Position numbers and translations under genes: made by a program | Notes under the pieces: generated by a model | The model's database searches: none | Told to the model about the DNA's origin: nothing | What the model saw: the letters and a program-made list of their open reading frames with translations, nothing else | Source: Blastocladiella emersonii ATCC 22665 | Lineage: Eukaryota > Fungi > Blastocladiomycota | NCBI GenBank assembly: GCA_025594325.1 | Contig: JANHCV010000001.1 | Coordinates: forward strand, 4,898,001-4,962,000 | Reading direction: 5' to 3' | DNA length: 64,000 bases | Shown here: positions 10,040 to 16,492 of the stretch, piece after piece | How positions within the stretch are numbered: position 1 is the first letter of the stretch | Layout of the letters: every line of letters starts with the position of its first letter

Positions 10040-13000
10040 ATGTCGACGCCACGGATCCTCTATGAATCAAAGGGCAAGAACCCGTCCGTGGTCCTCGACG
10101 ACTCGAATGCCTCGCTCCCCGACGCCGTGGCCGGCGAGGTCGCCGCCGCCGCCCCGGCCAGTACTGGCGCGGCTGCCGGGGAGCCGAGCAGCCGCAAACC
10201 GCCGACGCTGATGCGCCGCACCACGAGCCTGCCGCACGCGCCATCCGGCACCGGCGACGCGCCGCCGCCCGCGCCGCGACCCGACGCCCGGCCCGTCGTC
10301 GTGCACCACGGCATCCTCGACGGGATCATACGCGCCAGCAGCGCGGCCCCGTCGCTCCCGCGCCAGCCGAGCCCGCTCGGTCTCCAGAGCGGGGACGAGA
10401 GCAGCGACAGCGACAGCAGCGCGTCGAGGCCGGGCTCGCTCGAGCAACGGGCCGCCATCGCATCGGCCGCGCCCACGATGCCACCACTACCGCACGGCGC
10501 CCCGCTCGACCGTCGCAAATCCAAGTCAGCCGCCGGGCTCATGGTCGGCGTCGCGGCCGCCATGGCCGCGGCCAATGCGCGCGAGGCCGGCGCAATCCCG
10601 AAGATGCACCCGCTCGCGGCGCCGTCCCCCGCGCCGTCTTCGCCCGTCTCGGCGTCCCGGAGGCGGCGGCGCGACCACGAGGAGGGCGTCGACGAGGAGG
10701 ACGAGGAGGCCGACTCGGTCCTCCCAACAACCCAGCGGGTCGGCATGAGCCGCAAGCCGTCCACGGCGAGCCGATCGTACCGGCCAGCAAGCCCGGCGTC
10801 CGCCTCGGCCGCCCCACCTCCACCACCCCCCCCACCACCCTCGGCCGCCGATTCGACGCGGGACCGAATCGCCGAAGACACGCACGGCGTGACGGACGCA
10901 ATCATCGAGCGGATCAACACGATGCGGGTTCGGCCGGTGCACCCGGACCTGTTAGGCCCCGTCTCGCAGATGCACTTCTTCAACCTGGTCTTCGCGTTCG
11001 GAGTCACCGTGTGCAACGTGTACACGACGGCGACGATCCTGTTCGCCTTCTTCCGCGGCGGCGAGGTGAGCGGGATCAAGGACGCGGGCACCGCGCAGTG
11101 GCAGTCGGTCGTGCACGTCATTTCCGCAATTCTGCTCCTCGCCAGTGTCGCCAAGGACGTGTCCCGCGTCCTCATGACAATCGGCGTGCTCGCGCGCGTG
11201 TCGCAGGCCAAGCAGGTCAACAAGTGGGTGTTTGGTACGCCTTCGCGTCGATACCCGCCTTCGGGGCGCTGACAACCGTACCACGTTTAGCGTTCGCCAG
11301 CCACTCGCTGACCATGCTGCCCGCGGTCGCCGCGTCGCGTCCCGTGCAGCGTGCCATCACCGAGAGCGCATTACTCATGAGCCACCCGAAAGTCGTCGTC
11401 TTCGACCTGGTCCTGACCGACTTCCCGCAGGGCATGGAAGCTTTGATCCGCGTGTACAACGCGCCGGACGTGCTCAATTGGCTGATCGCGACGGTGAACG
11501 CGCTGTCCATCTTCTTCCACCTGTCGCGCGTGTCGTGGGCGACGCTGCTCATGATCAACGAGTACGGCCAGCGCCGGCAGCGGATCCAGGCGCGCCGCCT
11601 CGCCGTGCGCCGCTGGCGCTACGACCTGCAGATCTCGGTCGCCGTCGTCGGGTCCGACAAAGCCAAGGCCGCGTTCCTTAAACAGATTGCGTCGCACAGC
11701 AGCCCCGCCGCGACCACCGGGCACGGGATCAAGAAGTCGACGACGGGCGCGACGATCGGCAGCGCCATCAACAAGACCGGGCATACAGCGGGTATCGGCG
11801 CCTCGGGATCCGCCCGCGGGTCGTCGTCGGCGCTCGTCCAGGACCTCGCCATGCGCTCGCGCCTCAACACGGTCAACGCCATGAACCGCGTGTGGCACTC
11901 GACCACGGGGCTCGCGCTCGGCGCGGCCGCTGTCACGGGCGGGGTGACTGCGAGCCCACCGTCGTCGACCGCGGGACTGTCGGCTACCAACGGCGCCACC
12001 GCGCCGACGGGCACCGCGAGCCGGCCGGGTTCCGGGCAACTCGCGCCCGCGTCAATCCCACTCCCCGCGAGTGCCGCGGGTTCAGGCCCGCCGAGCGTGC
12101 AGGGCTCGGACACGTCGCTGGAAAACCACGGGAGCACGGGCGCGCTGAGCGGGAGCGGCGGCGTGGGCCCGAGCAACCCGAGCTGGATGAAGCTGCTGGT
12201 GTCGCAGCACCCGTCGACGCTGTCGTTCTTCCTGCAGGTGTACGCGCTGGCGGCGTTCCGGTTCGCGTTCCAGCTGGCGCAGTCGGCCGCCGCAGACCTC
12301 CCACCAGGCGATGTCGCGGGGCTCGAGTTCAACCACGCGGTGCGGACGCACGCGCGCGCGCTGAAACTGCTGGACGCCAAGAGCGTGTGGGCGGTCGACA
12401 CGCGGTCGGGGTCGCGCGAGGGCGACTTGGTGCGTGGCGCGATGACGGCGATCGCGGGGACCGCGCTGGTTAAGTCGACCATGGCGAACCTCGTGGACGT
12501 GGTGCAGGCGCCGCGCGAGCGCGCGACCTACCTCGGGCGGTTCGCGCGGCTGCTCGACGGGACCATCGCCAAGCTGCGCGGCGGCGGGCACCAGCGGATC
12601 CACGCGGACGCGGTGCTCGCGCTGCTGCCCGTCAACCCGACGGTCATGGCTAAAGTGCTCGACGACCTAAGGCCGCTGCTCGTCCGCGAGCGCATCCCGC
12701 CGGCGTTGCTGGGCGCGTGCCCGCACTCGCTCGCCGAGATGCTGTTCTGCACGCTGTGGGGATGTCCCGCCGTCAAGGCCGACCTCAACAAGGCCAAGGT
12801 CGCGTGCTTCATCGACGTGGACGTGGCCGGGCTCAAATCGGGCGTGTACGGGACCGCGCACGCGAGGGCCATGGTACGTTCTCCTCGCTCTCGCACGACG
12901 ACGGGTTTCTCACCGAGCGTCGCGGCGTCGCGGCGTAGAACGAGCTGCTGGACCTGACCGTGGTCGTGCTGGACATGAACGCGTTCGACGAGTTCGACAG

Positions 13001-13694
13001 CCCGACGTCCCCGAAAACCACGGCGCTCAAGGACACCATCGACCGGACCTGCACCTTCCTCAAGCGCAGCACGCGCGTCTCCAAAGTCCTCGTCGTGTGG
13101 GCCAACTACGCCCAGTTCAAGGCCAAGATCCACAACAAGGCGCATATCGGGTCCATCGCGCGCAACCTGCTCAAGGTGTACCCATCCATGCACCGCGTCC
13201 TCAAGACGGCCCCGCCGTCGCACACGGCGGGCAGCGGCGACCTCCCTGACGTCCCGCACTCCGGGTCCGCGACCGCGCAGAGCAGCTCGGCCGTCGCGCT
13301 GCCGTTCCCGCACGGCGCGTCGGGCGCGAACCTGCCGGGCGGCGGCGGTCCGACAACCTCAACGTCGGGCGTCGGGATCAGCGAGTCCATGTCGTTCGCG
13401 GCGGGGGCGACGGTGGTCGGCGCGGGCGAGACGCTTCTGGGCGTGGCTGGCAGCGCGACGGCGTCGCGGCGGACGTCGGGCGACCCGGGGACCACGGTCA
13501 AGTACCTTTCGGGGAAGGCGATTCACCGGTATTTCGAGCACAAGCTGGCGAAGCTCGACCTGACGCTGCAGGTGAGCGAGGCCGCGTCGCTGTTCACGGA
13601 TGAGGCGGGCCCCGCGGCGTGTGTCGAGACGGTGTTGCACGCGGTCCAGGCGCGGTTTCTCGTGCACACGCTCGAGCAGGCGAATCTCGCGTAG
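10040..13694 (+). CDS. Multi-pass membrane protein fused to a degenerate heterotrimeric G-alpha-like domain (1177 aa)
   Basis: join(10040..11234,11291..12873,12939..13694) = 3534 nt. Both introns are GTACG..AG (56 and 65 bp) and keep the frame. Order: disordered N-terminus, 4-5 hydrophobic segments, then G-alpha-like elements: VAVVGSDKAKAAFLKQI (G1), [20 protein letters not shown] (G3), LTVVVLDMNAFDE, VVWANYAQFKAKI (G4 region), and a C-terminal alpha5-like helix. Confidence 0.8.
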
Positions 13695-13749: not shown

Positions 13750-15996
13750 TCACGGTTCGTAGATCTTCGAGTACGACTGGACGGTGCGGCGGCACGTCGG
13801 GCAGGTCGTGTACCGGTTGTGCGCGAGGTCCTCGCGGCAGTCGTCGCACACGACGAGGCAGTTACACGGCCGCAGGACGATCGACCGCGGCTGCGCCTGG
13901 CACACGACGCACGCCGGGGTCGAGGTCGTGAGATGGAGCGAGTCTTCGTCCCATGGCGCAGCGGGCGGAAGATGCGCACCTTGATCCATGGCGGCCTGCA
14001 GCGCAGCGCGGGGCGACGAGGTGAGGAGCGACGCGGAGCGGGTGAGCGGGCGGTTGGACGACGACGCGGCCGCCGCGGCCTGGGTCCCGCACATGGTCGG
14101 GACGGGCACCTGGTGGTCGGCCACGAGCATGACGACCTCGCGGCACAGGTCCTCGCCCTCCTCGTCGTCAAAGACCTCGGCGTCCTCGTCGGGATACTCG
14201 ACCTCGTCAAAGTCGCTGTCCTCGGCCGGGTCGAGCTCGCCCTGGAGGAGGTAGACGGCCGTGGTAGTGAGCGGACCGGGCGGCGTGTTGGCGGCAGCGG
14301 CCACGACGGCGGCGGCAGCAATCGCCTGGTCGTTGGACTCCTCGAAGATGAGGGCGTCGGAGGGCCGCACAGTCAGCTGCAGGGCGCCGTCGTCGTCGTC
14401 GAGCACGAGCGTGTCGTCGCCGCAGTTGCCGAGCACCTCCTCATCGTCCATGTCAATCGAGGCCACGGCGGTGTTAGGGGGCGCGAGCAGATGGGTATCG
14501 TTGACGTAGGCCGAGTCCGGGTTGGATGCCGCGGCAGCGGCAGCAGCATGTGACCAGTGCGGCTTAGTGGCGGCAGCATCGGCATCGGTGGTGGTATTGA
14601 CTGCGAGGGCAGCAGCTGGCACCGCCCGCGACGGGAACGCGCGAGCCCAGAGCCGCTGCAGGGCGCCGATGCGGCGGATGCGGTCGATGAGGCGGACGAC
14701 GAGGGTGTCGTAGGCGAGGTCCATGCGGAACAGGCGCGTGAGGGCGCGCAGCTTGCCGCGGATCGACGAGTCGACCTGGCGCGACGTGGCGTGGGCGCCG
14801 GCGCTCGCGTCGTAGCGGAGGAACGGGTTGACGTGCGCGGTCGCGGCGGCAGCAGCAGCGGGCGAGAGCGGGGAGAGCGGCGCCAGCTGGCCCGACGGCA
14901 GCGTCCGAGGCGGAAGGCGGGCGAGCAGGATGGGTGTGTCCTCGTTGCGCAGCGGTGCCGAGCCCGAGGCGTCGAGCATGGCGCCGGCGAGCTTGAAGAC
15001 GGCAAACGAGTAGGCGTCGGACAGGGCGGGGAGCATGGCGCGGGTCGGTGTGGCGGGCCGCTGGCGCATGCGGCCGCCCGTGATGACGACGGTGGCGGCG
15101 TAGATGGCGAGCACGACGGCGGTGATGAAGAGCGAGAAGAGCTCGGGCCACTTGGCGAGGGCGACCATGGACGGGTACAGGGGCGACTTGAAGCGCAGAA
15201 CAAAGTGGGCCATGCTGACGAGCCCCGTGACGGTGGTCGGGACGAGGCGGTACTTGCGCTCGAGGCCGAACAGGCCCATGGTCTGCAGCAAGACGATCTC
15301 GACGGTCTGGAGCAGCACGACGAGGCAAATGTCGGGCCCGCGCGGGTGGAGGTAGGTGACGAGCCCCCACTCGACGAGATTGTGCTGCTCCGAGGCGCGG
15401 CCGGTCTCGAGGCAGTCGACGTAGACGTCGACGCACGCCGCGACACAGAAGAGGCGGAAACAGTTGAACAGCACGTCCGAGATGGCGGCGGGCGACGTGG
15501 CAGTGGAGCCCGGGGCGATGGCGGCGCCGATCCACTTGGCGTGCAGCGGGGCGAGCCCCCAGGCGGCGCCGAGCGACGAGTCGACGACCATGGTCCACAG
15601 GGTGTAGGCGTTGGTGGCGAGCAGCACAATGAGCGGCAGGCGCATGGCGAGGTTGGCCCACACGGGCAGCTTGCGCGGCTGGCGCGGGGCGGCCACCTCG
15701 CGTATCCGGCCGGCGATGACGGACTGGATGGCGAGGAACACGACCGTCCGCGACGTGATGAATGACAGGAGCGACGGGTTGAAGCTGGACGCGGCGGCGG
15801 CGGCGGAGTGCATGGCGTGGGTCATGGGCGCGGTGGCAGCAGGGAGCGCGGCGGCAGCCGAGTCGGAAGCGACAAGCCCGGACGCGGATGCGGCCTCGGA
15901 GACGGCGGCGCCGACAGCGGCGGCCGTGTCGGCGGCCGACTCGGCAGCGTGGGGCAGCAGCGCCACCCTGGCTGCGGCGGACGCGAGTTCTTCCAT
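13750..15996 (-). CDS. Transmembrane RING E3 ubiquitin ligase, Asi1/Asi3-like (~748 aa)
   Basis: Single exon starting MEELASAAA at 15996. Several TM segments and a C-terminal RING: CVVCQAQPRSIVLRPCNCLVVCDDCREDLAHNRYTTCPTCRRTVQSYSKIYEP. Confidence 0.8.
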   Translation of the reverse strand: MEELASAAARVALLPHAAESAADTAAAVGAAVSEAASASGLVASDSAAAALPAATAPMTHAMHSAAAAASSFNPSLLSFITSRTVVFLAIQSVIAGRIREVAAPRQPRKLPVWANLAMRLPLIVLLATNAYTLWTMVVDSSLGAAWGLAPLHAKWIGAAIAPGSTATSPAAISDVLFNCFRLFCVAACVDVYVDCLETGRASEQHNLVEWGLVTYLHPRGPDICLVVLLQTVEIVLLQTMGLFGLERKYRLVPTTVTGLVSMAHFVLRFKSPLYPSMVALAKWPELFSLFITAVVLAIYAATVVITGGRMRQRPATPTRAMLPALSDAYSFAVFKLAGAMLDASGSAPLRNEDTPILLARLPPRTLPSGQLAPLSPLSPAAAAAATAHVNPFLRYDASAGAHATSRQVDSSIRGKLRALTRLFRMDLAYDTLVVRLIDRIRRIGALQRLWARAFPSRAVPAAALAVNTTTDADAAATKPHWSHAAAAAAASNPDSAYVNDTHLLAPPNTAVASIDMDDEEVLGNCGDDTLVLDDDDGALQLTVRPSDALIFEESNDQAIAAAAVVAAAANTPPGPLTTTAVYLLQGELDPAEDSDFDEVEYPDEDAEVFDDEEGEDLCREVVMLVADHQVPVPTMCGTQAAAAASSSNRPLTRSASLLTSSPRAALQAAMDQGAHLPPAAPWDEDSLHLTTSTPACVVCQAQPRSIVLRPCNCLVVCDDCREDLAHNRYTTCPTCRRTVQSYSKIYEP

Positions 15997-16492
15997 GGTT
16001 TGGGTGTGCGTGCGTGTGTGCGTTGCGGGAGGTGTGGTGGTGCGTGCAGCTTCGTGGCGGGCGCGTCGAGGATGATACGGGAGCGGTAACAAGCGCGGCG
16101 ATGGCGGTTCGCCGAGGGATGCGCAGCAAAGCCGATCAACGCGCGCGGCGCGCCCTGCTGTGGCGCTGTCGCAGCCCACGTGGCCGCACCTGCCCGCGCT
16201 GAGCCTCCCGTGGCATCACCGACGCGCCGCTCCCGGCCGAGCGGAACGGAACGGGCAGCAGGCGCCCACCGTGGCACCTTTCCTCCCCTCTCCCTCCCTC
16301 TTGTCAGAGAACGAATCAACCAGCGACTCGTCGCACCACGTAGCTTTGTGATCATCCCGCTGCACGCAGCCAACACCATCGCCATTGCCCCGTCGCCGCA
16401 CCCCTGCCCGCCGCCACGGTCCCCCTTCTGCCTGCTCGCCGCCTCCGCAGTAACAACAACAACAACCACCGCCACCTTCGGACACACAAACA

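Follow-up and report, generated by a model that had tools for sequence, protein, structure and literature searches.

Canonical G-alpha proteins (Pfam family PF00503), such as G-alpha-i1, Gs, Gq and the fungal GPA1, are peripheral GTP switches that are held by N-terminal lipidation. In engineered fusions between a G-protein-coupled receptor (GPCR) and G-alpha, which are artificial, the C-terminus of a seven-transmembrane (7TM) receptor is joined to an active G-alpha. The N-terminal region of the plant XLG proteins (XLG1-3) is soluble, Cys-rich and without membrane helices, and contains a nuclear localization signal (NLS). XLGs have a very low affinity for GTP and are probably nucleotide-free in vivo, yet still bind G-beta-gamma (PMC8584482). 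7TM-RGS proteins of the AtRGS1 type also occur in chytrids (PMC3971589). Here, we describe a gene of the fungus Blastocladiella emersonii ATCC 22665 (Blastocladiomycota), located at positions 10040-13694 of a 64,000-nucleotide stretch of contig JANHCV010000001.1 (assembly GCA_025594325.1, positions 4,898,001 to 4,962,000 of the forward strand). This stretch is referred to as the window, and all nucleotide positions below are counted within it. The gene very likely encodes an integral-membrane, nucleotide-free pseudo-G-alpha, which is restricted to the Blastocladiomycota and probably acts through protein contacts.

The likeness to canonical G-alpha lies in the predicted fold from the N-terminal helix to alpha5, the helical insert, the order of elements and the hydrophobic alpha5 tail. 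The fungal protein differs in that it lacks GxxxxGK[S/T], the switch I Arg and Thr, DxxGQ, NKxD and TCAT, stays below the Pfam threshold and is apparently anchored through membrane helices to which the N-terminal helix is fused; in the orthogroup of the window protein, large low-complexity inserts are present in addition. Plant XLGs are the nearest functional precedent: they are G-alpha-derived, have a long extension at the N-terminus, and their nucleotide boxes are degenerate, and an XLG3-like cluster ranked first in a shape search of the ESM Atlas. In contrast to the fungal protein, XLGs are recognized by the Pfam G-alpha model (100% of that cluster carries PF00503), and they arose independently in plants. 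The engineered fusions likewise carry a membrane domain and a G-alpha on one polypeptide, whereas the fungal module is natural, comprises ~4-5 helices and is not 7TM, belongs to no receptor family and precedes an apparently dead G-alpha. The fungal models resemble the open, empty-pocket state of receptor-bound nucleotide-free G-alpha (3sn6_A, 7l0q_A, 7eb2_A). In 7TM-RGS proteins, a component of the G-protein cycle has also become membrane-integral by fusion to transmembrane helices, but there the 7TM part is fused to an RGS GTPase-activating domain and not to G-alpha. To our knowledge, the protein described here would be the first natural G-alpha with membrane attachment by transmembrane helices. 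No description of a transmembrane-fused or blastoclad pseudo-G-alpha was found in the literature, a mention in the survey of Anantharaman et al. 2011 being possible.

Predicted fold of the G-alpha part

AlphaFold models were built for two relatives of the window protein: the Catenaria anguillulae orthologue P0001, which is 54% identical and had pieces of the window protein in its alignment, and the compact Sorochytrium paralogue P0008. The P0008 model has a mean pLDDT (predicted local distance difference test) score of 79.5 and a predicted template modelling (pTM) score of 0.69. For P0001, the pLDDT is 62.6 overall, with block means of 84-95 over several core stretches and disordered low-complexity inserts. 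A Foldseek comparison of the P0008 model with the PDB yielded 186 matches at E <=1e-3; G-alpha chains took all of the first 50 places (best E 3.6e-7, probability 1.00, ~400 aligned columns), in line with the Ras-like plus helical-domain fold for which a test had been suggested with the original prediction. The P0001 model, after trimming, recovers G-alpha in VIA structural alignments. VIA aligns 305-338 residues to G-alpha chains, including the helical domain, at a sequence identity of 8-15%. Among the long alignments, the best pair the models with receptor-bound complexes whose helical domain is open (3sn6, 7l0q, 7eb2, 6pt0); in these models, the likeness to open, receptor-bound G-alpha is suggestive and would fit an empty pocket. 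Named matches in a shape search of AFDB were mostly G-alpha proteins. As judged from the models, the family possesses a G-alpha fold, i.e. a Ras-like domain, an all-helical domain between alpha1 and beta2, an N-terminal helix and a C-terminal alpha5. Some long G-alpha-annotated AFDB clusters from other organisms, A0A075APT9 (1105 residues), A0A2P6NEG8 (903 residues) and A0A316VDC0 (690 residues), gave alignments that reach far into the N-terminal and membrane part of P0008, with poor TM-scores.

Sequence comparison of the family points in the same direction. Scanned singly, five of 12 members match PF00503 (E <1; best 6.5e-8, for a trimmed domain), all of them below the gathering score of 48.8 bits, to which the top family member at full length comes with 29.9 bits. 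The matches are co-linear (profile positions 40-171, 53-227 and 111-302), positions 40-171 covering the all-helical-domain region in relatives, and no other Pfam family recurs. In a phmmer search, the start of the helical domain of a paralogue aligned to residues 63-97 of an engineered G-alpha chain. A language-model (ESM) feature search with the C-terminal 489 residues of the Catenaria orthologue returned 100 nearest clusters, all of which carry PF00503 (score 0.89, 177 shared features), a result that serves as a lead, not as a test. Echoes of canonical G-alpha, taking the canonical strings as the original prediction quoted them, can be seen in beta4 (DMNxFD vs ALSxYD), in beta5 (VVWxNYxxFKxKI vs LFLNKxDLFxEKI) and in alpha5.

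In the window protein, all elements of which are encoded on the plus strand, the models would place beta1, a degenerate P-loop with the loop sequence G-S-D-K-A-K-A, and alpha1 (LQISVAVVGSDKAKAAFLKQIAS) at 11626..11700. Low-complexity insert 1 (residues 536-694; 11701..12177) separates alpha1 from the helical domain and is predicted to be disordered, the P0001 model having a pLDDT <50 at residues 137-281. The all-helical domain, the insertion specific to G-alpha, occupies 12178..12705, as indicated by PF00503 in relatives and by the VIA alignment. It is followed by the equivalents of switch I and beta2 (GACPHSLAEMLF) and of beta3 and switch II (ending in AHARAM) at 12712..12873, by beta4 (LTVVVLDMNAFDE) at 12954-12992 and by beta5 (KVLVVWANYAQFKAKI) at 13083-13130, which contains NYAQ where NKxD is expected. 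After low-complexity insert 2 (13209-13496), the protein ends with RYFEHKLAKLD, LFTDEAG in place of TCAT, and an alpha5 that terminates in LEQANLA (13497-13691). Both inserts, the one after alpha1 and the one before the RYFE block, are rich in Ser, Gly, Ala, Thr and Pro; they occur in the orthogroup of the window protein and are absent from the Sorochytrium paralogues.

The claim that G-alpha landmarks follow the hydrophobic segments in the correct order is borne out by the models, which have the same secondary-structure order as G-alpha. The motifs quoted for it lie within a few bases of the positions given at the time, RRWRYDLQISVAVVGSDKAKAAFLKQI at 11608-11688 and NYAQ at 13104-13115. The motif assigned to 12820-12837 is also close to its place; that interval spans DVAGLK only, however, and the full 10-residue motif corresponds to 12808-12837.

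Loss of the nucleotide-binding boxes

The nucleotide-binding boxes were compared in a family alignment of 11 members from six species, with residue equivalences to canonical G-alpha based on secondary-structure order and on this alignment. At the P-loop, where the family reads G-x-x-x-x-[KR]-x-x-[FL] and the window protein GSDKAKAAF, GxxxxGK[S/T] has lost its second Gly and its Ser/Thr, and the loop is, by eye, one residue shorter. The switch I region, placed manually at GACPHSLAE, is without the Arg finger and the Mg-binding Thr, and is not conserved in the family. DxxGQ corresponds to FIDVDVAG in the window protein, with Gly-Gln replaced, and to LDTSIV, LDVHQK, LNMPSQ and others in the family, where only the Asp is widely kept. 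For NKxD, the window protein has NYAQ and the family N[YFV]xx; for TCAT (the G5 box, TCA[TV]), the corresponding sequences are FTDEAG and TDxxG. A complete GTP box (GxxxxGK[S/T], DxxGQ, NKxD etc.) is found in none of the 11 aligned members, and all five boxes are degenerate in each of them. The original prediction, which had listed the P-loop, the switch II Gln and NKxD as substituted in the window protein, can thus be extended to the whole alignment.

Other blocks of the same domain are strongly conserved, namely DMNxFD, VVWxNYxxFKxK, YPSL, RYFExKxxKLD, TDxxG and the alpha5 tail. Since the boxes are lost while these blocks are conserved, the pattern is that of a pseudoenzyme under selection and not of decay. 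The family would thereby qualify as a pseudoGTPase, with the GTPase fold apparently kept in the models, the nucleotide motifs lost and purifying selection suggested by the alignment. From the motifs we infer an absence of nucleotide binding.

The membrane module and its junction with the G-alpha part

The N-terminal 282 residues of the window protein, encoded in exon 1, are predicted to be disordered. They are followed by a conserved juxtamembrane helix (residues 283-310, 10886-10969), by hydrophobic helix a (residues 311-338, 10970-11053) and by hydrophobic helix b (residues 352-385, 11093-11194), which carries a conserved K-[DE] pair. Beyond segment c, a polar helix d, in which the acidic motif DLxLTDxPxG (VVVFDLVLTDFPQGMEA) is conserved, lies at 11389..11457, and the last membrane helix e (residues 459-487, with a conserved SRxxW), together with the basic equivalent of the G-alpha N-terminal helix (NEYGQRRQRIQARRLAVRRWRYD, residues 488-510), at 11470..11625. 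According to hydropathy and the P0008 model, helices a, b and e are clear membrane helices, segment c is a hydrophobic helix-break-helix and helix d is polar. The family alignment contains conserved polar residues in the K-[DE] pair of helix b, H-S of segment c, D..D.P of helix d and S-R of helix e; such conserved buried polar residues argue for a module that is more than a passive anchor. With three strong and two weak hydrophobic segments and no match to a GPCR family, the module does not have the layout of a 7TM GPCR.

The last membrane helix appears to pass straight into the G-alpha N-terminal helix. In the models, one long helix spans both (P0008 H271-321, P0001 H58-108), VIA puts G-alpha residues 2-30 on it, and it runs on into beta1; the counterpart in the window is 11470-11625, with beta1 from 11626. 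As helix e, the N-terminal helix and beta1 all lie inside exon 2, the junction between the membrane and G-alpha parts is independent of splicing. In the predicted topology, the N-terminus is inside, four spans and a re-entrant segment c follow, and the G-alpha domain is inside, i.e. cytosolic, because the N-terminal helix must be cytosolic, the long disordered N-terminus does not begin with an obvious hydrophobic, signal-like stretch, and the loops b-c and c-d are basic.

An ESM Atlas search with the membrane module gave unnamed clusters and, with two queries, a weak and unproven XK-related lead at 0.85. DUF1761 and PrsW were considered as identities of the module and dropped, the matches being weak and unproven (E 0.007-0.03).

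Gene model

The gene consists of exon 1 (10040..11234), which encodes the disordered region, the juxtamembrane helix, helices a and b and the beginning of segment c; exon 2 (11291..12873), a single uninterrupted frame of 527 codons by which the membrane module is joined to the G-alpha fold; and exon 3 (12939..13694), which encodes beta4, beta5, insert 2, the RYFE block, LFTDEAG and alpha5 and ends with the stop codon at 13692-13694. Joined, the exons yield 3534 nucleotides, equivalent to 1177 codons and a stop, with zero internal stops. The ATG at 10040 is the earliest start codon downstream of an in-frame stop. Both introns are of the GT..AG type, with the fungal-type 5' site GTACG. Intron 1 (11235..11290; 56 nucleotides, GTACGC...TTTAG) contains a CTGAC branch-like site; if it is retained, the frame stops at 11272 (open reading frame (ORF) 10040..11272), whereas the spliced joint KWVF/AFASHSLTMLP restores the family motif W.YAF..HS...LP. 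Intron 2 spans 12874..12938 (65 nucleotides, GTACGT...GTAG), and the sequence across its joint, AHARAM followed by NELLDLTVVVLDMNAFDE, is unbroken in the Catenaria orthologue P0001 (SSARAMNELLDFVLVVFDMNAFDD).

The region has a G+C content of ~70%, and long open frames on several strands are frequent by chance. A chance frame is excluded because orthologues match at E 6.8e-102 (Catenaria anguillulae) and 1.1e-88 (Blastocladiella britannica). The predicted two-intron, 1177-codon model, as proposed originally, is thus confirmed at the level of sequence by the stop-free join and by a conserved protein across both joints. The companion claim, that the transmembrane and C-terminal parts belong to one gene, also holds, as exon 2 alone spans both.

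Tail-to-tail with the gene and 55 base pairs from its stop codon, an ORF of 809 codons lies on the minus strand (13750-16179). The middle part of its product is hydrophobic and multi-helical, and a RING-like CxxC...CPTC motif lies at the C-terminus; judged by this layout, the product may be a membrane E3 ligase.

Family and taxonomic range

An exhaustive HMMER search of 1.84 billion representative proteins, with a profile built from two orthologues together with the window pieces, returned 16 clusters, every one at <=1e-10, all from Blastocladiomycota and all labelled 'hypothetical protein'. The family is represented in Allomyces macrogynus, A. javanicus, A. arbusculus, Catenaria anguillulae, Blastocladiella britannica, B. 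emersonii and Sorochytrium milnesiophthora. The Catenaria orthologue P0001 is 50-54% identical to the window protein, and the A. javanicus orthologue P0017 is a full-length protein of 1150 residues with the same layout as the window protein. A phylogenetic tree unites the window protein with those of Catenaria and A. javanicus (support 100/99); the sister of this group is a second group of paralogues with A. arbusculus and B. emersonii members. The duplication within the family therefore predates the divergence of these genera.

The fusion was also sought in related genomes, as had been suggested with the original prediction, and was found in at least 10 models from five other species, which combine at least part of the membrane module with the G-alpha fold in one protein; full-length fused models occur in A. 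javanicus, in four Sorochytrium members and in members of A. arbusculus, B. emersonii and B. britannica. The A. macrogynus annotation divides the orthologue between neighbouring loci, AMAG_04950 (P0004) for the membrane half and AMAG_04949 (P0005) for the G-alpha half; given the fused A. javanicus P0017, this split is likely an annotation error.

Some Sorochytrium members show peculiarities of their own. P0007-P0009 (KAL7750487-KAL7750489) have consecutive accessions on one 501-kb contig, which suggests a tandem paralogue array. P0011 (S. milnesiophthora KAL7750499, 1250 residues) has ~700 extra N-terminal residues (1-740), in which what looks like a membrane region of several helices and a stretch resembling RGS (FRQFVVKDLCIESILFVEEF) can be discerned by eye; an RGS domain was supported neither by Pfam nor by phmmer against the PDB. 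P0011 could be a 7TM-RGS fused to a transmembrane pseudo-G-alpha, or a merged gene model. In P0016 (KAL7749310, 1139 residues), residues 1-420 comprise an active GTPase of the Era/MMR_HSR1 type and a KH domain ahead of the membrane module (Pfam E 4.2e-19), and this protein is probably a merged gene model.

Alternative explanations

Several observations weigh against a membrane-anchored, nucleotide-free pseudo-G-alpha. In Pfam, the three exon pieces of the window have no match, a phmmer search with the window pieces against PDB sequences gave nothing relevant, and an hmmsearch of the family profiles A1, A3 and A4 against PDB sequences returned only noise, a single G-alpha chimera at E 2 among it; for this family, comparing a sequence profile with single sequences is too weak. 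The PF00503 comparison proposed with the original prediction has thus a divided outcome, with no match for the window pieces and sub-threshold matches in five of 12 family members. The structural support derives from models of relatives, one orthologue and one paralogue, with shallow multiple sequence alignments of 18-19 rows. For the whole P0001 model, the Foldseek result is weak, with top matches to G-alpha at E 0.011, because ~280 residues are disordered. By manual comparison, the switch II Trp, a G-beta contact in canonical G-alpha, is apparently not conserved. An exhaustive HMMER search found no relatives of the membrane module beyond the family members, and the module matches no Pfam family. 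Finally, Lys or Arg is kept at the P-loop position in most members, and non-canonical ligand binding is possible.

This last point leads to the alternative that a remodelled pocket of the G-alpha-like domain still accommodates a nucleotide or some other phosphate ligand, and that the domain acts as an unconventional switch. Some so-called pseudoGTPases do keep nucleotide binding, the residue at the position of the P-loop lysine is basic in ~8 of 11 members, and the beta3 Asp (DxxG) and the NKxD Asn are mostly kept. We nevertheless consider such a switch improbable: besides the P-loop, which is apparently shortened and without its second Gly and Ser/Thr, all aligned members have lost the Thr of switch I, the Arg finger, Gly-Gln of switch II, Lys and Asp of NKxD, and TCAT, and the models are nearest to the nucleotide-free, open state of G-alpha. 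Descent from G-alpha could itself be questioned, as small GTPases (Arf, Rab) and further TRAFAC GTPases are among the matches of the shape searches, with high TM-scores for the Ras-like half, and identity to G-alpha is only 8-15%; the C-terminal region would then be a P-loop fold of the generic Ras/Arf-like kind, its helical insert being unrelated, and would resemble G-alpha without descending from it. That is very improbable, since the insert sits at the G-alpha position between alpha1 and beta2, three members match PF00503 positions 40-171 or 53-227 by sequence, the start of the insert region aligns to an engineered G-alpha chain, and the VIA alignments include the helical domain. Moreover, G-alpha fills the top 50 in the searches with both models, except for a few Nog1-type GTPases for the poorer one. 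Least probable of all, to the point that it can hardly be entertained, is a merger of two genes by prediction, or a decaying pseudogene. The split A. macrogynus annotation and the absence of the window's own protein among the database proteins found would fit two genes, but the single frame of exon 2 covers helices c to e as well as the N-terminal helix, beta1 and the helical domain, the models make one helix of the last membrane helix and the N-terminal helix, and both parts recur together in the fused models of the five other species; a pseudogene is contradicted by an intact frame of 1177 codons at 50-54% identity to Catenaria.

Possible mode of action and meaning

The original prediction had proposed a nucleotide-independent G-alpha fold anchored by transmembrane helices or, alternatively, a receptor-G-alpha fusion. 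The anchored fold agrees with the predicted structure, the motif loss and the helix fusion; the module is not 7TM and matches no receptor family. The functional role as a whole we infer along the following lines. A long disordered cytosolic N-terminus would lead into a small membrane module of three clearly hydrophobic helices and two weaker polar segments; the last helix of this module would pass unbroken into the N-terminal helix of a complete G-alpha fold, the alpha5 of which ends in the hydrophobic, G-alpha-like tail LEQANLA. Because all nucleotide boxes are degenerate in every aligned member, the protein is most likely nucleotide-free, without a GTP/GDP switch. It probably constitutes a permanently membrane-held, G-alpha-shaped adaptor that operates by protein-protein contacts and for which G-beta-gamma, effectors or receptors could be partners. 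Binding would perhaps be modulated by whatever the polar membrane module senses, comparable to plant XLGs, which act without nucleotide exchange.

A more specific, and rather unlikely, version is a one-component, nucleotide-independent unit of sensor and G-alpha: the membrane module would sense, move the N-terminal helix and alpha5, open or close the helical domain and thereby capture or release G-beta-gamma or an effector without a GTP cycle. If true, this unit would represent a natural, permanently 'precoupled' receptor-G-protein complex, in which the last membrane helix, being the G-alpha N-terminal helix, would hold the Ras-like domain beneath the module as in receptor-bound G-alpha with an empty pocket.

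For the membrane-held pseudo-G-alpha in general, the finding, if true, would be the second independent case, after plant XLGs, of a useful G-alpha shape without a GTP cycle. Surveys of G-protein repertoires that rely on Pfam thresholds (e.g. PMC3971589) would overlook such proteins. The family persists as several paralogues in every sampled genus of one fungal phylum. Since Blastocladiella and Allomyces serve as models of phototaxis and chemotaxis in zoospores, the family is a candidate component of those sensory pathways.

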